The notes below the pieces were generated by a model. The model was not told where the DNA came from. It saw only the letters and a program-made list of their open reading frames with translations, and did not search any database. The position numbers were made by a program, and so were the translations under genes. This document shows, in pieces, positions 5,954 to 62,066 of a stretch of 64,000 nt of DNA (the stretch's first letter is position 1; every line of letters begins with the position of its first letter). Origin of the DNA: Selaginella moellendorffii (Eukaryota; Plantae; Lycopodiophyta). The stretch is from positions 6,050,822 to 6,114,821 of the forward strand of contig NW_003314261.1 of NCBI RefSeq assembly GCF_000143415.4, in the 5' to 3' direction.

Positions 5954-6925
5954 NNNNNNNNNNNNNNNNNNNNNNNNNNNNNNNNNNNNNNNNNNNNNNN
6001 NNNNNNNNNNNNNNNNNNNNNNNNNNNNNNNNNNNNNNNNNNNNNNNNNNNNNNNNNNNNNNNNNNNNNNNNNNNNNNNNNNNNNNNNNNNNNNNNNNNN
6101 NNNNNNNNNNNNNNNNNNNNNNNNNNNNNNNNNNNNNNNNNNNNNNNNNNNNNNNNNNNNNNNNNNNNNNNNNNNNNNNNNNNNNNNNNNNNNNNNNNNN
6201 NNNNNNNNNNNNNNNNNNNNNNNNNNNNNNNNNNNNNNNNNNNNNNNNNNNNNNNNNNNNNNNNNNNNNNNNNNNNNNNNNNNNNNNNNNNNNNNNNNNN
6301 NNNNNNNNNNNNNNNNNNNNNNNNNNNNNNNNNNNNNNNNNNNNNNNNNNNNNNNNNNNNNNNNNNNNNNNNNNNNNNNNNNNNNNNNNNNNNNNNNNNN
6401 NNNNNNNNNNNNNNNNNNNNNNNNNNNNNNNNNNNNNNNNNNNNNNNNNNNNNNNNNNNNNNNNNNNNNNNNNNNNNNNNNNNNNNNNNNNNNNNNNNNN
6501 NNNNNNNNNNNNNNNNNNNNNNNNNNNNNNNNNNNNNNNNNNNNNNNNNNNNNNNNNNNNNNNNNNNNNNNNNNNNNNNNNNNNNNNNNNNNNNNNNNNN
6601 NNNNNNNNNNNNNNNNNNNNNNNNNNNNNNNNNNNNNNNNNNNNNNNNNNNNNNNNNNNNNNNNNNNNNNNNNNNNNNNNNNNNNNNNNNNNNNNNNNNN
6701 NNNNNNNNNNNNNNNNNNNNNNNNNNNNNNNNNNNNNNNNNNNNNNNNNNNNNNNNNNNNNNNNNNNNNNNNNNNNNNNNNNNNNNNNNNNNNNNNNNNN
6801 NNNNNNNNNNNNNNNNNNNNNNNNNNNNNNNNNNNNNNNNNNNNNNNNNNNNNNNNNNNNNNNNNNNNNNNNNNNNNNNNNNNNNNNNNNNNNNNNNNNN
6901 NNNNNNNNNNNNNNNNNNNNNNNNN
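5954..6925. other. Assembly gap (N run)
   Basis: Ns. Confidence 1.
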
Positions 6926-45969: not shown

Positions 45970-46530
45970 TCTTTTACGTACCGCATCAACGAAGCACTTT
46001 GTACAATGACAAGTCCTCTAACAGACTGAGCAAGAAATAAACACGTTTAGTTCCACGCGCTATGCTAACGGAAAACAAAACTTACCACATCGTCATGCAT
46101 GACTGGCTCGTAAGTTTTCTCCAGGTGTTTCTGAACCGTCTTATAATCGTCACTTTCCTTGTCCACGCAAGTCATAGAGCTCTTGAGCTTGGCGTAACGA
46201 TCGGATAAAGGATCGTTCAATGTGTCCCCACTCCTATCACCTAGGATATGCAGAGATTTCAGTACACTTGCGCCCTGGAGACAATATTAGATATCATCAA
46301 TCTCGATTTGCAAAAGTACCAGTTGAGATGAAGGAACCAGCGAAAACCACTTACTACTAAAATCCAGGCACATTTGGTCGTGTTTCTTGCTGTCAGAGTC
46401 TGCGAACTCACTCCCGCCTGCCAATGCAGTTTGTTAACTCATAACCTCCTGAAACACGAGCTTACATTGCTTGAAGTGAAAGAGGCAGCTCGGGCGAGTT
46501 GATTCCCATCTCAAACATTGCATCCCTGCT
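45970..46530 (-). pseudogene. Inverted PARP3 fragment
   Basis: Reverse match to about 36545-35830 with deletions. Confidence 0.88.
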
Positions 46531-46534
46531 AATA

Positions 46535-48420
46535 CCATATCCACTACCAACTGACAAAATTTCCTAACGAGGGCGACATGGAGAAGTCCATTGTCTTCAA
46601 GAATCTTTCTGCTGCAGCAGACAACTCCGCCTGAAAAGTTGGAAAGCGCGTAAGTTCCTATGTGAGCCCATATAAAACAAACATAATGACATTTTACCGT
46701 CTCGTTTATCACAAGCTCTTTGAGTAAAAAATGCACCTGGCAAACAAAGTACAAAATGCTCTTCAACTCAGAAGTATAACAAACCAAATCTTACAGCATC
46801 TACAGCCACCTCTCAAATAGCTGGCCGAGACTTCAATAAGTCACCGATAAGCTTGCTCTGGAGCAATCAAATGGCGCTGATAGCCATCAGCTTCTGCGAT
46901 AACTTTCCGACCGTCTGTATGGAAAGATGTCTGTCGAACGGCAGCTTCAGGAAGCAGGTGATCAAACACGTTATGGATTCGATCTCCTCCAGGACATATG
47001 ACACGATACTCAAAAGTAAGTCAATTAAAAGCTTCCTCATACAAAAAAATTTACCCTCCATCAAAATACGCCTTGAAAACATGGTCAAACGCCCTGCAAA
47101 GCTCTAACACGGTATACAGTTGCCCCTAAAAATGCAAGTACTTCAGCTCCAGATATAAGGAAGCCAGCTAGTCCTTTATCTTACCCCTGCGTCCGATGCA
47201 ATAGGTCTCCCAAGTCGGTCAAGTTCTGCTTCTAGTTCGGTGATGGTTTTGTTTATAAGCGACTGAATACTCGGAATTCGTGCCTTTATCACTGCTTCCA
47301 AATGCTGCAAAAGAGATTTTTCAGAGCGGCCACAAAATGTATCACAATCACCTTCGAAAGAACTCTTCCAAGATATTCAGAGCCCATGCGGCTTGCCAAA
47401 TGCCTGTAATCTGGACTTGAAGCGAAAAACTCACGTTCCCTTCGTCTGGCGACGATCATGTCGACACTTTTATTTATGTCTGCTTGTGATCGATTGACAA
47501 CACCGATCCAGGGGCGTTGCAATCGATAGGAATGACCCTCCAACACCTGTAGAAAATCAGATTCAATCTAAACTGAAGAGTTTAGTAAACATAAAGATAC
47601 TTGCATCAATAGCTCCCTTATCCATCAACTGTGTGAGAACTCCAAACGTTCGGTCGCCTAACTCAAACGTTCTAATTCATTAGAACATTGCCATGAAAAC
47701 AATATAATCTCACCGATCGACTTCGCGTGCAAGTTTAATTGCGTCTGATGTTGCTATATCTTGATTGGCAGGAGAGATGGCCAGAATGATCGTATTTTCC
47801 TGAAGGTACAAGATGTTAAGCACCGCAAAGGTTGAATAATAACCAGAAACCAACCTTTTCAACATAATACCTGACCATGTTTTCAATCTCAGCTTTCAGG
47901 CTGCCCGTCTGCAAAGCAAAAGGAAAAGAAAAAGCTAAAACATTTGTCATGAAAATTCTTACCAACAGCAATTTTCGTTAAGCCCGCAAGGTCTATCATA
48001 GTCAAATTCACGACTGCCACTAAACACAAGAAGTTAAAACTCGTCGTGGAAACAATCAACCATGAAACAAACCATTTCGAGAGTAAATGCTGAGATGGAT
48101 AGGAACCGGCGAGATTTGTTTGCTACGTCCAGTGCTAAGACAAATAGAAAGCGCAAGAGCTAAGTCCGCCAGAAGAAGTTTCTTACCAAAGTCCGTAAGT
48201 TTCTTCTTAGGTAGATGCAAAAACTCCGCCCTCTGTCCTGATCACAATTCCTTCAAACAGAAGCCGTTATCACCAGAAGCCAAGTAAAAAGAGAAGCACC
48301 GACGATTTCCCGGAACAATCCCAACCAAGCCCGAGGAATAAATCTCATTCTCCACTAAAGAAAATGCGAGACACTCACCTGGCCTCCCACCACACCCCAG
48401 CACCGTGCAAGCTCGCTGCA
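46535..48420 (-). pseudogene. Inverted DRP1 pseudogene copy
   Basis: Reverse match to about 33060-30920. ORF 47289-47546 is nearly identical to 32019-32276; frameshifting deletions elsewhere. Confidence 0.92.
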
Positions 48421-48514
48421 TACTTATTTTAGTCGCGTTCGCAGAGAAAGAAGACATCTTTCGCACGAAGCAAAATAAAACCCTCGTCACAGCTTGGAAA
48501 CCCTAGCGAAGTTG

Positions 48515-50487
48515 ATGGGCTCCCTGGTAAGATTCTTTGCTCGTTTTCGTTGCCCCGGTGATAGCACCATTTTGTGTGAAGGGCGAGCATTGGCCGAATG
48601 CTGCGATACGCCGGGTCGATGCTTCGGCGATAAAGGAATACGCTCAGGCAAACAAGCATGGATTTCAGTTGGAGAAGAAGCCGATCAATCCAAGTCGGCA
48701 ATGCTTCGCAGGAAAAATCTATGGCTTGAGGCTCATAGTGGCGCTCCATGCCCCAGCAGGTGAGCTCAGTTTCCGTAGATGCTTTAGTGAGTTCCATGCC
48801 TCGCAGGTGATTTCTACAGCTTCATCGGATGCTTCAGCGAGTTCCACCATGTCTTCGTAGAGAAAGCTCTTCCGGCGCACCTCGGTATCAAAGATTACGC
48901 CCGGATTCTCGGCGAGGAGCTTGCGACGTTCGCTGAGACGTATCACAGTCTCCTGCCACCACCCCGCAAAATGGAATCCATGCATGATGCTCTTGAGGTT
49001 CTGGAGGAAATCCGGCAGGATGCACGCGATTGGGAGAACGACGTCGCCAAGCTCTATCCAGTTTTGGTTCTTCTCCCGGTGGACTTTTTGCCTGGGAACG
49101 ATGGCACGTTTGGCAACTGCAGCGGCCTCACTGACGACACCGAGGAGCCCGATGGTGTTCCCATGGACGAGCTGTGTGCGGAGCTGATTGATCCAACTAA
49201 ACTACCGATCTTCACTGTCACTTGGGACGTGAGCTCGCGCAGTGACAAGGAGAAGTTTATGAGGCTGTCCGAGTATGAGAAGAGAGGCCATCTTGTGCTC
49301 ACCGTGAGACCTCCAAGCTTCCATCTTCCAACCGCTTGTCCGAGGAGCCTTTCCACGTACCTCTACCTGTGCCTGGCAAAGAAGCCATTCCTTGTCGAGC
49401 ACTCCAATGCCGGTGAGCTTTCCTTTCTTTCTTTTGTATGGCAGATGCTCACGGTTTTTTTCAGACCTCAACTTACCTTTGGTGGACTGGAACCTCCACA
49501 CTGTGTTTGGCAGCGGCGTGGACGACTTTTTGCGATCTACGGTGATGTGCGACTTGGATGTTGGGCTCAATGAGGGTGAAGCTGCGAAGGTTGAGTCCTT
49601 GAGGCCGCTGTTTATGGATCTGGACGATGCTCTCGACTTGGAGTTGTGGACGAAACGTCAGTGCAGGAAGAAAAGTGGCTGGTTTTCTCTCGATGCAGCT
49701 GGAGGGGACATCGAGACTTCACACTTGCCGTGGCCGATCAACAAGCTGGTGGCATGGACAAGGAGAGCCAGAGCAATGACCAGGCTTGGCATCAACTGGA
49801 AGAACTCAGAAGCCAGACAAAAAGAGGTAACAGTGAGAGCTTTCGAGGCTTTTATTTCTTTCTTTATGGCTTAAGATTGATTTCATTTCAGATCTATGGT
49901 CGAGCGTTGCGCGCTTACAAGGATCTCTCCTCTGTAAAGCAACTGAACAAAGATTCAAAGTACTTGTGTGGCATGTAAGTTATAGTGTAGCCTTTCATGT
50001 TTTTCTGAAATCTTCTTTTGTTCTAGGCGGCCCACGAGCCTCGATGCAATGCTCCTCGCTCACATTCTATTTGTGAAGCGCATCTCTCTTGTAAGTACCA
50101 AAAGCATATGATTTTTCTCTATGATTCATGTTGTTGTGTCATTGCTCTTAGGAGAACTCCATTCTTCGAGCTGCGCTTGAGTTGGAGCATCCGGAGCTCA
50201 TCGAGTACTCAGACCTTGGAATTCTTCTTATCGCCTGGCAGTGTGTCTGTGGATTGGGGACGGGATCCGCCGAGGTGCAAGGCAAGCAGACCATGGATGA
50301 CGGGAAGCAGCTCAAGAAGCAAAAGGCTGGCGGTGGTGGCGACGCCAAGAGCCGTGAGCAGGACGGTAAGAACTTCCACGAGTTTGTGGACAAGCTCAAG
50401 AGCAATGTGTCGGACGAGGAGGTGAGGCCGATTCTTTTCGAGAACGCTCAGGAGATGGATGCTTCCAGTTCCGTTCATCAGCATTGA
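48515..50487 (+). CDS. Chimeric METAXIN-like protein (546 aa): unknown N-terminal region, metaxin GST-like core, PARP3 exon-1-derived tail; 7 exons
   Basis: Exons 48515-48526, 48582-48759, 48807-49412, 49465-49826, 49892-49974, 50027-50090 and 50152-50487 splice at GT-AG into one open frame. Metaxin-like motifs VRPPSFHLPTACPRSLSTYLYL, LDDALDLELW, LPWPINKL, RLGIN..NSEARQKEIYGRA, RPTSLDAMLLAHILF. Confidence 0.65.
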
Positions 50488-51475
50488 TGGCGAATGGTTT
50501 TCCTTCTTTCGGTTGGTCTTTTCTAGCTTTTCTCTTGTCGCTTGCATTTTTAGTGCTCATCAAATTATGTACGGTCCGCTAGAGCCCTGTGGCGGTGCGC
50601 TGAAGTTCTATCCTGTGGACATTTTGTGTTGCTCGTCGTAAATCATGCAATTCTTCTAGGATGTTGTGTGCGACGCGTGGGTGGAATCTTTCAAAGCAAT
50701 ATCACGTCTCATAGGTGAAATGAGTGGGGACACATTGGACGATCCTTTATTGGATCGTTGCCCCAAGCTCGGCGATTATAAGATATACCTGGAGAAAACT
50801 TACGAGCCGGTATGTTTTCCGTTAGCACAGCGCGTGTAACTAAACTTTTGCTCAGTCTGTTAGTATCATTGCTGAAAGCCGTGCACCATCCTTCGAAGAA
50901 ATTGACACGCTAAACAACGAAGTGCTTCTTTGGTGGGGTACGTAAAAGATTCTTTTTCCTGCTCTGACTGCGGTATTTTAGGAACAAGCGCCTGCAATCT
51001 TATCAAGGGAATGCAGCCAGCAATCTACAACGCTCCTGTTCCTGGCTACATGGTATTAGAGTTGTCCAAATTTGTGCGAGGTAACCTCTCATTTACTTTT
51101 CTAGTTTGGCAAGGGTCTCTACTGCACCGGCGCGTCGTGCAAAGCAGTTAGCTACGCCTTCAGTGGAGTGGACGGACCAGTTATACTGGCCTTGGGCGAT
51201 GACATGCTCGTGTTTCCAAAGGCAGGAGAGGTAAGACTCTCACCTCAAGAAAGCAGCGTTCTCATCTTAATGCCATCCATTCACAGGCAATCAAGGCCTT
51301 CGGAAATAAGCTTCCGGATTCATCTGAGTAGAACAACACCACGGCACTGGTCGGGACGATTGCATACTCGAGTACAACGAGTATGAGACAATGTGATTTG
51401 TTTTCTAGGTGAAGTTGCAGTTCATAGTCCAAGTAGAGAAATGAGAGGACTTTGTTTGCTAGAAAGAATCTCAAA
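50255..51475 (+). pseudogene. Direct-orientation, heavily deleted PARP3 copy (its first exon forms the tail of the chimeric ORF)
   Basis: Matches about 33970-34335, then jumps to 35580 through a shared AAGTTC and continues in pieces to about 37250. Confidence 0.9.
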
Positions 51476-51936
51476 AAAAGAAAAGAACCTTGAGCCCGGC
51501 GCTTACCGAGTTTTCCAGCTTGAGCATATTCCCATCTTAGAAAAAGAATTTATGACGTAAATAGCTTTAGATAAAAGCACAAATGAAGAACAAGCTATGG
51601 TTTCTTCTTCCTGTTTCTTTCAGAGTAGGAAACATATATTTAAGAGTTAGCCTGAGTTTCATATACCAGTTCTAGCATTGACTAAGTAAATTATTAATTA
51701 ATACACAACTTGTAATTTGGATTGCAAGATGATCTTAGTTGTTAGATTGCAATCCAAACACACACTGCCAGGTGATCAGAGTAATTCCAAGGTTTGCATA
51801 GTTGATGAGCCAGAACTCATCAACTATGACTTAGATGCTCTAAGTCAAGTAGGAGCTTTAGGTTTTTGTAGTAGTTTATATTTGTCTAACAGAAGCTCTA
51901 GATGTTTCATAGTTATCACATTTTCTAGAAGGGAGG

Positions 51937-51940
<4 letters not shown>

Positions 51941-51984
<44 letters not shown>
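51941..51984. repeat. (TA)n microsatellite
   Basis: Directly visible. Confidence 0.97.
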
Positions 51985-51985
<1 letters not shown>

Positions 51986-52353
51986 CCCTAACTAGGTAAT
52001 ATTAATTATAGTACTTTAGCATATAAATTGTTTATTTAAATTCAATCTATCCATTTTTGTATATGGGTTTAAACCTCAATTAATACTACTATAGAAAACC
52101 AGGATCAAATTGTCACCTTAAGTTCTCAACTAAACTTTTGAGAAAGTAAAACGTGTTAAGAACTGTAAAATCTGTTTTATTGGCTTCTGCAACACACTAC
52201 AAAATTATAACTTGTCATTCTATGACTAGTTGTTTTTTAAGGTCTTGAAGGCCATGATCTAATGCAATGGGATAAGGAATTGATATGTTGCACAATACAA
52301 AGAGCAAGGATGACTAAAGCAATGGGATGGAGCTATTTCCAAAGGCAGGAGGA

Positions 52354-52874
52354 CTATCCGTACACTTTAGCGCCTCGTGCAATAGCATCTTGGATCCTTG
52401 CATTTATTTCATCCTGGGTCTCCTTCCAACACCACCGGGCTTTACGCCAATCTGGTTTCACCTCCCAATCTGTAGATTCAAGCACCTCACCATCCTTAGA
52501 GACCTAGAACAAGAAGAAACATAAGTTGAATCCTCTTGTGCCCAACTGAAAAACATACACCAAGAGTGCTCTTGGTGTAAAAGAATGGATCAATGGCATA
52601 CCTTCTGCACATTGGAAAACATATACTGGTTCCTCTCAGCATCCTCAGCATCATCAAGTATTACTGCAGTGCAACGCACGCCCTCTTCATCTGCGGGGTA
52701 AAATCTCCCCCCAGTCATGGTAAATCCATCGCCAAAATCCTTAAGACTCATGATCAGCGGGAAATAATCCCTCTCTGTGACCGGATCATGGACCATACTC
52801 TCCCCAAATGTGAAATCCACCACGTATTCCTGGCCTATGCGCCTCAGCATCCCACGCACAACCTCCGCGTCCAT
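52354..52874 (-). CDS. Orphan acidic protein of about 140 aa, 2 exons
   Basis: Exon 52874-52602 (MDAEVVRG...FSNVQK) joins in frame through a GT-AG intron to exon 52503-52354 (VSKDGEVLESTDWEVKPDWRKARWCWKETQDEINARIQDAIARGAKVYG*). Telo-box-like repeat just upstream. Confidence 0.55.
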
Positions 52875-55085
52875 GCTCACTAGCCCTAACCCTAAGTCAC
52901 AAATTTAGAACACGATCCATGTCCCATGGATGAGCAAGATCCTTGAAGAGGCCCAGTCTGTCCTTGTGGGCGCTGAAGATCACAACAATTGAGAACGGTA
53001 GAAAAACGGGAATGGCTGGCGCTGGAACGGCATCATAGTCGTGGGATTCAGCCATCGAAGAGAACGTGGCGTTTTCCTCCAGTAGTGCATGTCGAACTTT
53101 CTTTCTCGCCCCTGGTCCGTGTCATCTCTTGCCTGTAAATCTCCACCTCCCTCCTCGCATCCGCTGTTGTGCATCTGCAGCTTCTTGTAACCCAGGATCC
53201 ATGGCTGGGCAATGGAAGGAGCGATCCCAAGGCAAGTTCTTGCTAATTGTCGCAAGCGGAGAATGCAAACTTAAGGTCATTCTTCGATGCAAGGAAGACG
53301 GTTTCTGGCTTTGACAATCATGCTGGTATCAGCTTGTCTTATTAGTTTTCAACTATTTTCATTCTTTCAATATAGTTACCATGGATTGACGTCACTAGGC
53401 TAACGAGAGTTTTGCTGCTCTGCAGAGAACAAATCCTGTAATCGGCTCTATAGCCGATGCATAATACTCGAGGTGTGATAACCAACAGAGGTGTTTTGGC
53501 GACTGCTCACGTTCTGAACTTTGTTGCAGGTTATTGTCTTGTATTTGCGCTCGAAAAGAAAAGCTTTGGAGGACACTGAATCACGCCAGATGACGGTGAA
53601 ATAGACTACGTATTAAGCTCACTTAATCGAGCTCTTCTAGCAGATGAACGAGTCCTTGGATGGTATCCTCTTCCTCCTGGCTTTCATGCATGGTGTTAAG
53701 CGTTCTTTCTCTCGATCAAGTTAATACATTTGCAACGCAAGGCTGTGCTCTTAAGAGCAAACACTGCATAATACCTCGACAGTTGGCATTTTCCTGTAAT
53801 ACCTATAGCTTGTGTGACATGTTCAAGTCAGATGCCCTCAAAGAATGATGTGGGATGATAACGAAGACGATAGACTCGTGATCGAGCAGGACATCGCAAA
53901 GGTTCTTTTGCGAGCGGTGGGTGATGGGAGTCCTCTGAACTGCGTTCTCTAACTGCATGCCACTCACTCGCTCTCTCAGCTTTCTCACGCTTCGCTGCGA
54001 ATCATGATAAGTTTAATTCCACGGCGACTGCATTTTGAAGCCGCCTTCGAACCTTGCGGGCGGACTTCTCTTCCAGCAAGAGTCCTACAGGCAGCTGATT
54101 TGTCCGTCTCAATTGCTACTGGTAGTTCCGTCACTTAGCCTGAACCAGAAAGCTCAACAGGATCTGGCGGTGAGAAGCAAGATGGTAGGAACTCGTCCTC
54201 AGTGCTCCCTCGTCGGAGGCATTTTGACCCAGACTTGCAGTGAGCGGCTTAGCACTTTGAAGCTCAATCTGCACATTATAGACCCATCGCCTAAACAGAT
54301 ACTCAGCAGCATAAAACAAAATGCAGGCGGCGTTTCAAAACTTAGTTTCGTGAATGAGCTCAAGCACAGTTCTCCTTCTCCTCGTAATTCCAGACCCTGT
54401 TCACGACCCAGACGGACATATCGAGCTTAGACAGCCAGCAATTCTGGCCGAGTGTCGGGGGTACAGGTTTTCGGAGGTGGTAGCGCGAGAGACCAGCTCT
54501 CGATAATACTATGGTGAAGCGGATCGGCTTACTTGCTATCAGCGACGTAAATGGGGTCAAATGGGTGAAGGACAACTCCTCTCGTACAATGGTCTGATTG
54601 TCCATCCCAACCTAGCTTGGTTATCCAACACAATTAGCACGGCTAAAAGCGAAAACACGAAAAATGAATAGCCTACATAAATGCTGGCACTTTGAAATCC
54701 CGTCGGACTGCTTTCTTCTCGCGCGCTAATCTCAACGCAGCAGCGTCATCGTCTTCGTCCTGAGTTGGCTCAAGCAGTGCGGAGGAGGCATGTATTGCTG
54801 GGAAGTTTGGTTCGTAGGAGAGAGGATGGAAAATCCTGCCATGGAGTGGACCTTGGGAACTGTGAGAGTCAGGCCGCTGCTTGCTTCCCCCGGAATACGC
54901 GATGAAGGAGTCCAGATATACGAGTCCTTGGGTGTCGTCCAGGTTTTCGTGCACAGTATCACTCTCGAACTAGATCGTCAGGAGCTGCACAGGTTCAGCT
55001 GTTCAGTACAAGTAGTTTGTCATTGAGGATGTAGAGGCAAGAAAGCCAGAATTAACATCTGTTGTATTTCAACAAGCCTGTGTCT

Positions 55086-55868
55086 CTATTCTCGACGAGC
55101 CTGAACTGACCACTCGCGCACGAACACCAATTCTAGATCGACTTTCAGTCGCTCCTCGTTTCTCCGCTTATACTGGTGGGAGAAGTTAACCTTCATCAAT
55201 CGTCGCATAGCCTTGAGGAATCTTCTCTTCTTGGCGAGTACACTCTTGCTCGCATCAACCAGAAGCATCTCTCCACCACAAAATCTGTCTCTGCTGCAGG
55301 CCTCCGCAATGCCATCCAGTCCTAGATCGATGACCTCCTCCAATGTTGTACCTCTCTGCCCCTCCACCGGGTTCTCCAGAATCCTCCTGGCTGGTACACT
55401 CCCACTCCCTATAGCAAGGATGGGATTCTCACTGCTCAATTTGTAAACTTGAAATCCTGCGCCAAGATCACGCACCATGAAAAGCTCCGAGTCGTTGTAT
55501 ATGAAGAAAGATGCCAGGTATCCTGTGATGACGCTTTGGGCAACATCCGCTTGGCACTTCAAAAATTCTGCTGCTTCCTCCAGCCCAAATTCTTCTTCTT
55601 TTGCCTTGATCTTCAAAAGCTTCGCCATGATGTCGCGCTCCTTGACGTTCCCTGCCGCGCCCAGCATGAGCCTTGGATTTTCACAGATCTCCACTATCTT
55701 GAAACCCCGTGATTCTCTCCATACTTCCTCATCTTCACACTCTGTCGTCGTCAAGCTATCGAAAAACACGACAAACCCAGAAGGATCCTCGCACTTCATG
55801 GCAATGCCTATAGTCCCTCTCTCGATTGGCTTGCGACTACAAAAGGACCTTGCCAGCCCTGGCAGCAT
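55086..55868 (-). CDS. Highly divergent proteasome beta-subunit-like (Ntn-hydrolase/threonine protease) protein, intronless; 5' end abuts a gap
   Basis: G|TIGIA..GFVVFFDS..FKIVEI..LGAAG..AA.FL..AIGSGS..A..ILE..T.EE.I.L..I.EA..RDRFCGG follows the proteasome beta motif order. Confidence 0.65.
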   Translation of the reverse strand: MLPGLARSFCSRKPIERGTIGIAMKCEDPSGFVVFFDSLTTTECEDEEVWRESRGFKIVEICENPRLMLGAAGNVKERDIMAKLLKIKAKEEEFGLEEAAEFLKCQADVAQSVITGYLASFFIYNDSELFMVRDLGAGFQVYKLSSENPILAIGSGSVPARRILENPVEGQRGTTLEEVIDLGLDGIAEACSRDRFCGGEMLLVDASKSVLAKKRRFLKAMRRLMKVNFSHQYKRRNEERLKVDLELVFVREWSVQARRE

Positions 55869-55909
55869 CGTGGCGACAAGCTCCTTCGACTTGGGAGGTG
55901 CTGACCGCC

Positions 55910-56318
55910 NNNNNNNNNNNNNNNNNNNNNNNNNNNNNNNNNNNNNNNNNNNNNNNNNNNNNNNNNNNNNNNNNNNNNNNNNNNNNNNNNNNNNNNNNNN
56001 NNNNNNNNNNNNNNNNNNNNNNNNNNNNNNNNNNNNNNNNNNNNNNNNNNNNNNNNNNNNNNNNNNNNNNNNNNNNNNNNNNNNNNNNNNNNNNNNNNNN
56101 NNNNNNNNNNNNNNNNNNNNNNNNNNNNNNNNNNNNNNNNNNNNNNNNNNNNNNNNNNNNNNNNNNNNNNNNNNNNNNNNNNNNNNNNNNNNNNNNNNNN
56201 NNNNNNNNNNNNNNNNNNNNNNNNNNNNNNNNNNNNNNNNNNNNNNNNNNNNNNNNNNNNNNNNNNNNNNNNNNNNNNNNNNNNNNNNNNNNNNNNNNNN
56301 NNNNNNNNNNNNNNNNNN
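55910..56318. other. Assembly gap (N run)
   Basis: Ns. Confidence 1.
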
Positions 56319-56994
56319 CCGCGCACAGAGATTGCCGTGCCCATGCCGCTACCACGAGCTCACACAAGATCCTTCGCATCGTGCTAGCTCTCGGGGCAAG
56401 CATCTTTCTAGTAAATTAAGAACCCTAACCCTATTCATTTTGTATATGTTAAGCTCAAATTTTTGGGTTTTCCTGTCAGATTTTTCTATAGTTTTTTGGT
56501 TTGATTAAAAAAATTAGTGAATATATTTAAAATATGATTAAATATTCTAGGATATCTTACCATTTAATGGAAATCTTGTATTTATAATTTATAAACATAT
56601 ATAAACTTCACTTATTTATAACTTATTTATAACTTATAAATGTATAAATATATAATGTATATATATATTTATAACTTATAAACATATAAGTGTTTTTCTT
56701 AAACACTTTCTAGTGTATTCCTTTTTATTCTACCATGTAATGGTTGATATGCAATAAGATTAATCTTGTGTTTATAGATTATTAGCATGTTTATAATTAT
56801 AGACATTTATTTGATCAATTGGATTAATAAGTAATAATAACATTACTATTGAGCAAACCAAGCATTACTATAGAAAATTATTTAATATATTTAGGAAATA
56901 TTACTGTAGCACACCCATAATATAATTATTTTACATTAGTTTTAATAACTCATATAGATTAGCATGTGGTTATTAAATATTTTAAGAAAATTAT

Positions 56995-57135
56995 TACATA
57001 ACCATTTATATAGTGAAACATGGTTATATAAACATGGTTATAACCATGTATGTTATAACCATGTTTATGTCACTATATACACATGTATATAGTGAAACAT
57101 GGTTATATAAACATGGTTATATAGTGAAACATTTT
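56995..57135. repeat. Short tandem/inverted repeat cluster (ATATAGTGAAACATGGTTATATAAACATGGTTA)
   Basis: Unit repeated near 57008, 57087 and 57119, with an inverted copy between, in AT-rich DNA. Confidence 0.7.
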
Positions 57136-57609
57136 CCTATATAATTTTTTCATATTGGAAGTTCTCACATTATAGTTTAATATAGTTAAAATCTGGAGAA
57201 TCACATAAAAAACTTATTGCTAATAAAACATTAAATGATCCTGTAATAAAATTTTATCCATAATGAAATGGTACAATTAAGATGTTAACATATTTAAATT
57301 TAAAAATTATTTATTACATATTCTTCTTTATTTGCATATACGAATTATTTCAGATCTTATTATAACTACGCTTTTTTTGAAATATTTTTGTAACTGAATA
57401 ATTTCTAAATTTTAAATTTGGATTTGCATAAATCTTAATGGTTTGGGAATAAGACATATGATGCAAGAATTCAAGAAAGCTATTATGTATACTAAAGTTG
57501 TGAGGGCCAAGTGTATTAAAAGAATCCATCATATATTACACCAAAGTGAGAAAAATTAATTAGAAAATTGTAGATAGATAATTAATATTCTATAATGCGT
57601 GTTATAAGG

Positions 57610-57952
<343 letters not shown>

Positions 57953-60059
57953 TTATATGCATGTATGTATAAGGTAATATGCTAATTATAGTACTATAAC
58001 ATATTGACTATTCATTTGGAATTGAATTTGGTCCATCTATTATTATATATAAACAGGGTCTAAACCTCCATTACTATACTTATTTCCATATCATAAACAC
58101 TCACATTAATGGAGATAATGGGTATTGTAATCTGTCCCTGGAGGGTAAAGTATTTTTGAAAGTGCTTTACTTCAGTATTTGGGATTGTATTTTTGTTTCT
58201 ATTCCTTTCTTTCTTTACTACATTTAGATTTATATTAGCTTTTTGCCAAATCTAAAATTCTAGCTATTATTGTGCTTAGATTTATTTTTCCTTCTGATCT
58301 TTATTACATTCTTTTTTTCCACTATGCCACGTCACACTTGAGGTTATTAATATTGCTTTGTTGAATTAAGCTTTTAGTGTTATAGGGTGTGATTATATTG
58401 GTGTGATACTTGTTCTTAGAATATTGTGATCTCTAGCTTTCATGAGATGTGATTACATAGCTTTTTCTATTCTTGGTGTTTTGTTATATGATATAGAATG
58501 TGATTATGATATCAATTAAAGAGATATAAATGATATAATTTGGTTATTGGAGAATGTTCAAAGATTGAATTTATATGATTGAATGGATTTTGGATTGTGA
58601 TAAGAAAATTTATTATTATGGAGATAACTTTGGAAAAAATTAAAGATTTTGCAAGGTAAGTATCAACCCTTTAATCTACCATCTAATCCTTTGCCTTTAC
58701 CTTTTACTCTTTCTTAACTTTTTTTTTATTTCTTAGCTTGAGCTATTTTCTTATATTCCTAGTGTTCTTTCCTCATCTATAGTGTTTTCTTCTCCACTTT
58801 TATGATTATCATTCTCAATCTAGTGTTGAGTTAAATGTTTTTTGTCTTCCTTATACTAATTTAAATGTTAAGCATATGCGTGTAGTTGAGAATCTTGATT
58901 TTGTTTTGTTAGTAAAGTCTTTGATCAGTTTTAGTGTTTTAAAGATTGAGTCACTTTGGCTAGAGTTTCGAGTTGAGTGCATATCCCCATTTGTGAGTCC
59001 CATTGAGAGCTTATACTTTATCATTTTTGCTGAAGAACTTATGTGTTCACTTGAGAGTGTGGATATTTTTATTGATTTTCTTATTTCAAATGTTGAATTG
59101 TGTGTTAATGTGAATCTTTTGATTATATTATGGTGACTAAAGCATTTTATGACAAGAAGTCTTTTATTTTCTAAATTTTAAACACAATAGTAGAATTGAT
59201 TGGTACCTGAGAGGAAAGTGTGAGCTTGCCATACCTTGCTCGGCAAATTGAAAATGTTGTGAGCAAATTTATAGTGATGTGGAACTTGATATAAAGGAAT
59301 TCCTTTATGCTTTTTTTGTTATGCCAAAACGTAATCTCATCTCCTAAACACACCTCATCACAGTGCTTGCCCAACACAGGCATTTAGATCAAGCAAGGCT
59401 TATCTTTAATTGAATCCTATAGTAGGATCTTTGCTCCTATTGGCTAGCATTTGCCAATAATATATAGTTTAGTGATATTTTTCAGCCGGAGCTAAGGCCA
59501 AGTATATATACAGGTAATTTTTAACTTTTATTACTAATGTTCTTCTTTTTATTTCCCCATTTTTGCATTAACAACTATTAAAAATTCTTCTTCATCCACT
59601 TTTCTTTCTTTTACTTCTTTAATTTTTTTCACTTTCTATTATTTACTTAAATGCTTGAAACTTTTTTTTCTTCGAAAGAGAGGATGGATGGGAGTCCAAT
59701 CCTAACGATGGAGTGAGGATGAACAAATACAATAATGAAGTGATGATAAATAATATAAATTGTGGAGTGAGAATGAATATAACTAAGTCCTAATAGAATA
59801 TACAACCTTATGTAGTAAACCTAAACAAATATGATAGTGGAGTGAAGTTCAATATAAATGGCAGAGTAAAGATTAATATAATAAATCCAACTAAAACTAA
59901 TGCTTTAAAACTTTTTTCTTTTTCAAGAAGAGGGGATAAAAAGGATATGAAAAATAAATAGAGTGAATTTAACCTCCCATGTATGGTGCTATAGGAAAAT
60001 GAGGGTTCTGAGTCTGGGTCTTGAATATTAACTGAAGGAAAGACCCAGAGTGCAGCACG

Positions 60060-61590
60060 TAAAATAGAGTTCTCCTGAGAGCATGAAACGCAATAGGAAT
60101 CATAGAGAAAAATCATATGCTTTTAGTACTTACAAGAGAAATGCACTTCACAAATAGAATGTGAGTGATGAGCATTGCATCAAGGCTTGTCAGCCACCTA
60201 GAAACCAAGGAAAGATCTTAGAAAAAGAATGAAAGCCTACATTGTAACTTATAGGATCCTTGTTCACTTGTATTACCAAGGAAATATCCTTGTAAGCACG
60301 CAATGCTCGACCATAGATCTGAAATGACACATGGTGATTTCAAAATTTCAATTATAAAGAACTCTTGTTACCTTTGTTTGTCTGGCTTGAGAGTTCCCCC
60401 AGTTGATACCACTCATTGTTTTGGCTTTCCTTGTCCATGCCACTAGCTTGTTGATCGGCCATGACAAGTGTGAAGTTTAGATTTCTCCTCCAACTACATC
60501 AGAAGAAAACCAAGAACTCTTTCTCTTGGATTGGCATTTGGTCCATAGCTCCAAGTCAAGAGCATCATCAAGATCCATGAACAGTGGCCTCAAGGACTGA
60601 AACTTAGCAGCCTCAGCCTCACTGAGCCCAACATCCAAGTCGCACATCACTGTTGATTGCAAAAACTTATCTACGTCATTGCCAAACGCAGTTAATAGGT
60701 TCCAGTCGATTATAGGGAAGTGGAGGTTGTCTAGAAAAAAACCATTAATGATAATCCTACAGAAAGAAAAGAAGGAAATACCAGCATTGGAGTGCTCGAC
60801 GATGAATGGCTTCTTGGCGAGGCATAGATATAGGTATGTGGAAAGGCACCTTGGACAAGAAGTTGGAAGATGGAAGCTTGGAGGTCTCACGATGAGCACA
60901 AGATGGCCTCTCTTCTCATACTCGGACAGCCTCACAAATTTCTCCTTGTCGCTGCGCAAGCTCACGTCCCAAGTGACAGTGAAGATTGGAAGTTTAGTTG
61001 GATCAATCAGCTCCGCACACAGCTCGTCCATGGGAACACCATCGGGCTCCTCGGTGTCGTCAATGATGCCACTGCAGTTGCCAAGCGTGCCATCGTTCCC
61101 AGGCAAAAAGTTCACCGGGAGAAGAACAAAAACTGGATAGAGCTTGGCGACGTCGCTCTCCCAATCGCGTGCATCCTGCCGGATTTCCTCCAGAACCTCG
61201 AGAGCATCATGCATGGATTCCATCTTGCGGGGTGGTGGCAGGAGACGGTGATACGTCTCAGCGAACGTCGCAAGCTCCTCACCGAGAATCCGGGCGTAAT
61301 CTTTGATACCGAGGTGCGCCGGAAGAGCTTTCTCCACGAAGACATGGTGGAACTCGCTGAAGCATCCGATGAAGCTGTAGAAATCACCTGCGAGGCATGG
61401 AACTCACTAAAGCATCTATGAAAACTGAGCTCACCTGCTGGGGCATGGACCGCCACTATGAGCCTCAAGCCATAGATTTTTCCTGCAAAGCATTGCCGGC
61501 TTGGATTGATCGGCTTCATGGACTGCTTCTCCAACTGAAATCCATGCTTGTTTGTTATTCCTCTAACCCATGAGCTCGCTAGGGTTTCCT
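60060..61590 (-). pseudogene. Inverted paralog of the METAXIN-like gene; 5' half near-identical, 3' half disrupted
   Basis: Matches about 48495-50175. In-frame stop at 60477, deletions at about 60240-60420 and near the 5' end. Confidence 0.8.
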
Positions 61591-62066
61591 ATAACCCTTT
61601 CATGAGCATAGGCAGTACAGTGTAAACCCTAATTTGCAATATGAGAGTAGATATTTTACGACGACGATATTTTTGAGAATTTCATTCAGTCTATGATCAT
61701 TGCCACCGTGCGTTGGACGACGATTTTTCGTTTGAGTGGACATCTATGGTTTTTATGCAAGATCCACTTTCTCCGCTCCTCGCTCGCTTGATTCCGCTCA
61801 AACGACAATAAGTTTCCTACAAATTTTTTCCTCATTACTATATCTTTACATGGGCTTCACACTCCTCCCTTTTGGAGATACTTCTTTAAATGACCCCATG
61901 CATTCCTGGCTTGCACGAATGCGGGCACGGTAGGTAGCGTGCGCTATCGTTCCCGCAACGCAATCTCTGGATCATACGATTAGAGCCTTCCCTCCCCCAA
62001 GGAAAAGAAAGAAAAAAAACTCAGGAACTAGTACCACTTTCATAGCGACGAAGAGGTGCCAAAGAT

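Follow-up and report, generated by a model that had tools for sequence, protein, structure and literature searches.

An expressed metaxin-PARP3 chimeric gene, probably maintained by selection, in the lycophyte Selaginella moellendorffii

Within a stretch of 64,000 nucleotides (nt) from Selaginella moellendorffii (contig NW_003314261.1, positions 6,050,822 to 6,114,821; hereafter the window), a gene at positions 48515-50487 of the plus strand was found to join a metaxin-like coding region, in frame, to the first exon of a neighbouring gene of the PARP3 type. This gene, termed copy A, is a chimeric gene, of which jingwei in Drosophila is a further example: it has two identified parents, an in-frame junction, and a transcript that runs across the junction. 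Copy A is real and probably functional, of a known kind, and we consider it reasonably likely that it is a protein-coding chimera kept by selection. Its open reading frame (ORF) is intact in both haplotypes of the assembly, and its unfused sister, copy B, is a pseudogene in both.

Two alleles of each copy were compared. A1 lies in the window (scaffold GL377565.1) and A2 on a second locus (L001, scaffold GL377622.1), which is regarded as the other haplotype of a two-haplotype assembly because it is collinear with the window in reverse at approximately 95-98% identity. Copy B1 is formed by 60049-61554 and a detached piece at 51750-51810, both on the minus strand of the window, and B2 by positions 9480-11160 of L001. 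A word search with exon 3 of copy A led to the B model on L001, SELMODRAFT_422696 (P0001), and a second search to SELMODRAFT_403024 (P0002), the public model of B1 on GL377565.1; word searches with exon 3, P0001 and exon 7 gave matches limited to these two B models. The fusion junction is present in both independently assembled scaffolds.

Structure and transcription of copy A

The original prediction described seven exons with canonical splice sites and an uninterrupted ORF of 546 amino acids (aa), and this model was recovered when it was rebuilt by hand from the window sequence. All six introns of A1 are of the GT..AG type and 47-65 nt long, as is normal for this genome, and the spliced translation of 546 aa ends at a TGA at 50485-50487. 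A predicted exon 1 of four codons (48515-48526, with its ATG at 48515) and a predicted intron 1 (48527-48581) are followed by exon 2 (48582-48759), which encodes part of an orphan N-terminal extension, by intron 2 (48760-48806), and by exon 3 (48807-49412), which holds the remainder of that extension (to approximately 49258) and the start of a metaxin core of GST-like type. The core continues, between introns 3 (49413-49464), 4 (49827-49891), and 5 (49975-50026), through exon 4 (49465-49826, its central portion), exon 5 (49892-49974), and exon 6 (50027-50090, the GST_C region). Beyond intron 6 (50091-50151), exon 7 consists of a metaxin-like part (50152-50256), ending in a hydrophobic stretch common to copy B, and a PARP3-derived tail of 76 codons (50257-50484) with a K-rich motif and a truncated PADR1_N domain; the 3' untranslated region (50488-50690) is former PARP3 intron 1 sequence.

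Two stranded raw-read RNA runs from one study (P7) and transcript contigs from two others (P1 and P2) were aligned to 47600-52000. The contigs have splice joints exactly at introns 2 to 6, five of the six introns, and the raw reads repeat three of these joints; the sixth predicted junction, that of intron 1, was seen in neither. Reads and contigs alike are absent from 48515-48620, which leaves exon 1 and intron 1 as predictions. Spliced RNA across the metaxin-PARP3 junction, on which the original prediction had staked itself, was found: one contig (X1, record 3) extends from 49611 to 50564 through exons 4-7, across the junction at 50255/50256 and the stop codon, with 0 mismatches. Other contigs carry letters of A2 (48947C, 48948A, 48994C, 50286A, and 50310A), indicating that both alleles are expressed, and the RNA of copy A is assigned to the plus strand because the first mates lie on the minus strand. 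The RNA contigs begin at 48696, which is not read as a transcription start because it adjoins a heterozygous site at 48694. At the 3' end, read depth falls to 0 after approximately 50686 and a contig reaches 50564, placing the end of the transcript at approximately 50565-50690. No splice joint leaving the last exon of copy A was present among the reads and contigs; given this and the drop in depth, the stop codon lies in a terminal exon, with the former PARP3 intron serving as 3' untranslated region.

Reads were also recorded over two other pieces of the patchwork of gene fragments in which copy A is embedded, at 47600-48190 and 50981-51274. Their letters are those of the intact parents, the dynamin-like gene (31.2-32 kb) for the first piece and PARP3 (36.5-36.9 kb) for the second, and since the reads cross-mapped from these parents, the two pieces show no expression of their own. 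A sequencing run labelled as another organism (X8, organism B) contains 35% of the sampled 31-mers of the stretch; either its label is wrong, or it comes from a very close relative with the gene.

The 5' end of copy A has a composite history. Predicted intron 1 was captured from the dynamin-like gene, whose intron at 31139-31197 was copied complete and in sense orientation into the chimera; the two are 88% identical, including donor and acceptor. The telo-box anticipated just upstream of the ATG, AAACCCTAG, lies at 48498-48506, 8 nt before the predicted start; its 8-mer AAACCCTA has seven copies in the window, where 1.8 would be expected, and copy B is also preceded by it, at 61580-61587 and 61624-61631. 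A1 has a 9-bp deletion after 48676 (48676/48677) that removes an in-frame ATG carried by A2, B1, and B2, and its ORF would thus require either the predicted start at 48515 with splicing of intron 1 or a predicted start at 48971, an ATG in strong context (AAAATGG). A further ATG, at 49259, immediately precedes the metaxin core and would give a metaxin of canonical length; it is found in A1 alone, the other copies having GTG.

Metaxin-like body and PARP3-derived tail

The kinship of the core with metaxin was assessed with a profile from which exons 6 and 7 were dropped, these short exons having been misplaced by MAFFT. The profile matched the canonical S. moellendorffii metaxin at an E-value of 2.2e-25 and metaxins of moss, fern, lycophyte, and palm at 1e-17 to 1e-10. 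Over 240 aligned residues, the core shares 44% identity with the canonical S. moellendorffii protein, and its identity to the metaxins of other plants is 31-35%; stretches such as PTSLDAMLLAHILFV and SHLPWPIN recur unchanged in the Selaginella protein, as do 15 residues encoded by exon 6. Introns 3-6, among them those bordering exons 4 and 5, coincide in position with four introns in the gene for canonical metaxin (L003). Given this identity and the shared intron positions, the A/B pair is a DNA-level metaxin duplicate, born in the Selaginella lineage and strongly diverged since. The public models of both A alleles and of B2 are recorded with GST_C_6; a Pfam scan in which the exons were submitted separately returned no metaxin-domain match, its sole match being PADR1_N in the tail. 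The canonical gene (SELMODRAFT_405344 / 447229, 330 aa) is located on other scaffolds, and SELMODRAFT_405344 was listed as the sole metaxin of S. moellendorffii in the supplement to Carrie et al. (2010; PMC3095331). The metaxin-like character of the core was thus upheld, but copy A is a recent copy neither of the canonical gene (44% identity) nor of the copy at 60-61.6 kb, with a synonymous divergence (dS) of approximately 0.5.

Like the canonical plant METAXIN (Arabidopsis At2g19080; SELMODRAFT_405344 / 447229), copy A encodes a GST-like core. It differs from that mitochondrial import protein, which belongs to the SAM complex of the outer membrane, in a 10-aa insertion within the core, in an orphan N-terminus of approximately 215 aa, and in having, instead of a linker, anchor, and acidic tail, a weak hydrophobic stretch of 15 aa and the 76 PARP3-derived residues. 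Nothing in copy A aligns with canonical residues approximately 237 to 330 (linker, basic region, anchor, and acidic tail), which speaks against a membrane anchor of the canonical type; the best 19-residue Kyte-Doolittle mean is 1.55 in copy A against 2.2-2.3 in canonical metaxins, and the hydrophobic stretch would be a weak membrane segment at best. The ancestor of A and B had lost the Ser/Pro-rich linker, the membrane anchor, and the acidic tail before the fusion took place.

The approximately 215 residues preceding the core are not metaxin and make up the orphan extension. The extension gave no Pfam match in the single-exon scan, and word searches found no relatives besides the B models. When the extension was compared by blastn and tblastx with the locus of canonical metaxin and with the remainder of the window, the dynamin intron piece was the sole similarity returned. 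An atlas feature search scored 0.75, below the useful level, and a single-sequence AlphaFold model of exon 3 was uninformative (mean pLDDT 37.6). Among the four copies, however, the variable sites of the extension are distributed 6/5/15 over codon positions 1/2/3 (p 0.03), and this concentration at the third position argues that the extension is translated.

The source of the tail is an intact gene at 33961 to approximately 37300 on the plus strand, with its exon 1 at 33961-34203. Its product has PADR1_N, Zn_ribbon_PADR1, WGR, PARP_reg, and PARP catalytic domains, and no coding sequence for N-terminal zinc fingers was detected upstream of it; the gene is classed as PARP3-type on these two grounds. 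Positions 50255-50608 of the window match its exon 1 and the start of its intron 1 (33971-34334) in the parental reading frame, the match beginning 10 nt after the parent's first ATG. The prediction of some 75 residues of PARP3 N-terminus including KQLKKQK was therefore borne out by 76 in-frame codons. Homology between A and B stops at 50256, exactly where that to PARP3 exon 1 begins, and the junction at 50255/50256 has 1-2 nt of microhomology. The tail covers 42 of 60 PADR1_N profile positions (Pfam E-value 4e-6, last exon) without the zinc ribbon, and its K-rich motif (KKQK) gives one match to a minimal nuclear localization signal (NLS) pattern. Copy A is not a PARP and lacks the PARP domain set, as the stop at 50485 precedes the zinc ribbon, WGR, regulatory, and catalytic domains.

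This stop was correctly attributed to the PARP3 splice donor. Comparison of the parental donor, CATTG|GTATGA, with the chimera, CATTGATGG, indicates that a 2-bp deletion of the donor GT created the TGA, which is common to A2. The account of the C-terminus held in part. The PARP3 tail is in frame, but the hydrophobic stretch, LGILLIAWQCVCGLG, is not specific to the junction; it is also present in B (P0001, 'LGITLITWQCVFGLQ'), where 50196-50256 matches 51810-51750. Since copy B runs 13 further codons past 50256 to its own stop (P0001), the fusion replaced approximately 13 codons and the 3' untranslated region, and not the canonical C-terminus.

Constraint on copy A and decay of its sister

The integrity of the frame beside heavily deleted neighbours had been offered as a hint of selection, and the comparison of haplotypes strengthens it. 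A2 retains an ORF of 550 aa with the same fusion and the same stop, and thus no disabling mutation was found in the other haplotype. Between A1 and A2 the exons differ by 21 substitutions, 10 synonymous and 11 non-synonymous, giving a ratio of non-synonymous to synonymous divergence (dN/dS, omega) of 0.31 (binomial p 0.009, or 0.07 with a conservative synonymous fraction). One indel, of 9 bp and in frame, was recorded over the 1641 nt of exons as against 10-11 indel events in approximately 1600 nt of flanks, a depletion with a Poisson probability of approximately 3e-4. Over the homologous 1.5 kb, B1 and B2 differ by 61 substitutions (4.1% compared to 1.2% in A) and 14 mostly frame-breaking indels, together with the TAA, at an omega of 0.65. 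In neutral simulations run to half the distance between the tail and its parent, with substitutions only, the whole ORF remained open in 0.5% of cases and the core with the tail in 2%, whereas the 228-nt tail alone remained open in 45-65%. Compared with its PARP3 parent, which is constrained, the tail has a dS of 0.23 and an omega of 0.36, with 13 of 76 residues differing. The low omega, the depletion of indels, the decay of sister B, and the rarity of neutral ORF retention together argue for selection on copy A; we favour the reading, drawn from these sequence comparisons, that the new ORF is maintained by selection, a reading that applies to the gene as a whole and not to the tail alone.

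Sister copy B is a pseudogene in both haplotypes. B1 (SELMODRAFT_403024) has an in-frame TAA near 60480, a 17-nt deletion, and a last exon that is split, leaving its 3' end detached at 51750-51810, a piece that in the other haplotype is joined directly to the remainder of B. The 8.2-kb block responsible (51810-60049) is absent from the other haplotype and contains a proteasome-beta-like ORF, long (TA)n arrays, and an N gap; around the insertion, neither long terminal repeats nor terminal repeats were found, just (TA)n microsatellites. B2 has deletions of 1, 5, 11, and 14 nt and has lost one donor. As every disabling lesion differs between B1 and B2, constraint on copy B was lost only recently, around the time the haplotypes diverged. 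The copy at 60-61.6 kb was therefore rejected as an intact parent of A, for it is broken and stands at a dS of approximately 0.5 from it.

The divergence of A from B is uneven along the gene. Over 49331-50256, dS is 0.50-0.57, dN 0.14, and omega 0.25-0.28, and so the comparison of A with the 60-61.6 kb paralog is not neutral; over 48690-49330, dS is 0.06-0.09. This difference indicates that the 5' parts of the two inverted copies were homogenised by gene conversion, in a tract pairing 48649-49330 with 61554-60870 and bounded near 49260-49333. Conversion probably ran from A to B, as B2 keeps remnants of the dynamin-intron piece from the patchwork around A. The low omega over so long a distance means that purifying selection acted on A and B alike through most of their past. 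The other pieces of the patchwork differ from their parents by 3-14% substitutions, less than A differs from B, and A is consequently not simply a patchwork copy of B.

Several observations weigh against a functional, selected gene. Expression is low: from a depth of 1-2 in a 12% sample of each run, it is estimated at approximately 1 read per kb per million. The in-frame ATG conserved in the other copies is deleted in the A1 haplotype and, if exon 1 is not used, several short upstream ORFs precede the next good ATG at 48971. The dN/dS between haplotypes is derived from small counts (21 changes), and conservation is unusually high in the introns of A as well. For the tail, no sign of selection can be separated out, with two synonymous and two non-synonymous differences between haplotypes and an omega of 0.36 relative to the parent, and the relative-rate comparison of A with B, polarised by canonical metaxin, gave 10 against 4 (p 0.18), a trend toward A being the conservative copy.

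Alternative explanations, origin, and meaning

One alternative proposal is that copy A is a transcribed but functionless chimera, a by-product of rearrangement with its promoter still firing and an ORF kept open by recency and luck. We judge this unlikely, although it is the most serious of the alternatives. It would account for the low expression, for the loss of the in-frame ATG in A1, for an N-terminal extension with neither relatives nor a confident fold, for the absence of independent constraint on the tail, and for the location of the gene in a patchwork of dead fragments. It does not sit well with exon indels that are depleted relative to both the flanks and copy B, with an omega of approximately 0.3 between haplotypes and 0.25 to B, or with neutral simulations on substitutions alone that leave 0.5-4% of ORFs open at the age of the fusion; moreover, both haplotypes have kept the ORF open, whereas B was disabled separately in the two.

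Another proposal is that the PARP3-derived tail is itself the innovation, its KKQK motif and partial PADR1_N domain conferring a new localisation (e.g., nuclear) or new partners, with selection acting on the fusion. The tail has indeed persisted since a dS of approximately 0.23 and contains the one minimal NLS-pattern match; it has kept the PARP3 frame through 76 indel-free codons beside heavily deleted fragments, where 2.6-5 indels would be expected from the neighbouring pieces. However, just 42 of 60 PADR1_N positions remain, without the zinc ribbon; 13 of 76 residues differ from the parent at an omega indistinguishable from relaxed evolution, and the simulated 228-nt tail stays open by chance in 45-65% of neutral runs. 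An adaptive tail of this kind is improbable. Doubtful to a slightly greater degree is its more specific form, in which the K-rich motif and PADR1_N helices would re-aim a mitochondrial import-receptor fold to the nucleus or to PARP3-related complexes. If that were true, copy A would encode a protein peculiar to lycophytes and new in function; its takeover would have made sister B dispensable, and B would then have begun to decay independently in both haplotypes.

Two remaining explanations carry little weight. The functional product could be RNA, the inverted A/B pair and inverted PARP3 fragments giving rise to double-stranded or small RNAs that regulate the parents, with the ORF incidental. 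Inverted arms do flank the gene (45970-46246 and 50709-50949, in addition to A and B), and the pieces are close enough to the parents that reads cross-map between them; yet the stranded reads over the gene come from one strand alone, while the enrichment of variable sites at third codon positions and the avoidance of indels point to constraint at the protein level, making this explanation very improbable. That the chimera is an artefact of assembly or annotation, joining unrelated sequences, is scarcely credible: the window does contain N gaps (5954-6925 and 55910-56318), and public gene models are over-extended here, but no assembly gap lies within 5 kb of copy A, and the junction recurs in two independently assembled scaffolds and, with 0 mismatches, in an RNA contig from an unrelated study.

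For the preferred explanation, a real gene kept by selection, the following course of events is proposed. The body of the gene is an old, fast-diverged, Selaginella-specific metaxin paralog that kept its GST-like core, gained the N-terminal orphan extension of approximately 215 aa, and lost the linker, anchor, and acidic tail before the fusion. A local rearrangement that scattered pieces of neighbouring genes would then have severed the last approximately 13 codons and the 3' untranslated region of A, the break joining it in frame to the neighbouring PARP3 exon 1. The later 2-bp deletion destroyed the PARP3 donor, so that the transcript carries a stop, ends in the former intron, and undergoes no downstream splicing. 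The constrained unit is presumably the N-terminal extension together with the GST-like body, and the PARP3 piece may be a tolerated passenger that chiefly provides a stop and a terminator together with a new C-terminus of hydrophilic character. The predicted protein has no good anchor and would probably be soluble, or attached at most peripherally, unlike a standard metaxin of the SAM complex.

Copy A resembles the captures by Pack-MULEs, Helitrons, and CACTA elements in rice, maize, and soybean (PMC1947982, PMC3288121) in that exons of two unrelated parents are joined in frame. As in other chimeras made by fragment capture, the new combination of exons is transcribed and a captured intron may be reused. 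It is unlike transposon captures in that all of its donors lie within approximately 35 kb and the pieces occur in both orientations, and unlike most captures of gene fragments in having an ORF with signs of constraint. At the edges of the patchwork no terminal inverted repeats were found and the inverted pairs are all internal gene fragments, although no search was aimed at Helitron termini. Given the nearby donors, the mixed orientations, and the lack of recognised transposon ends, we infer that local template switching during replication or repair fits the fusion better than transposon capture. PARP3 fragments at 45970-46537 (minus strand) and 50603-51434 (plus strand) flank the chimera and the dynamin piece, and include inverted arms approximately 4.5 kb apart (e.g., 46185-46246 and 50709-50770).

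A literature search found no paper describing the chimera. The existing annotation lists a hypothetical GST_C_6/PARP protein at this locus, and copy A, as a chimera of a known kind (exon capture), represents no new category of biology. Public version 1 models of 679 aa (L002, 20076-21340, GL377565.1) and 681 aa (L001, 11416-14475, GL377622.1), with GST_C_6 and PARP domains, share its strand and metaxin-like exons, but differ from the transcript in running past 50487 into degenerate PARP fragments. The metaxin-PARP catalytic fusion of 679 aa was rejected, as RNA continues through the stop without a downstream joint and the reads at 50981-51274 are cross-mapped. Because the RNA ends at approximately 50565-50690 and the reads beyond it belong to the PARP3 parent, the 3' ends of both models are unsupported, and the public gene models at this locus are wrong in that respect.

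As an instance of a gene remodelled by exon capture, copy A is well documented, and it comes from a lycophyte, a group in which few others are known. Its internal control is unusually good: a sister copy 10 kb away, in the same pair of haplotypes, is decaying while the fused copy is intact and expressed. The locus also illustrates how a 2-bp deletion of a splice donor can convert a damaging read-through into a clean stop and terminator. For the metaxin family, comparison of the genes shows that S. moellendorffii has, beside its canonical metaxin, a second metaxin-like lineage, which lacks the anchor and bears an orphan domain at its N-terminus.

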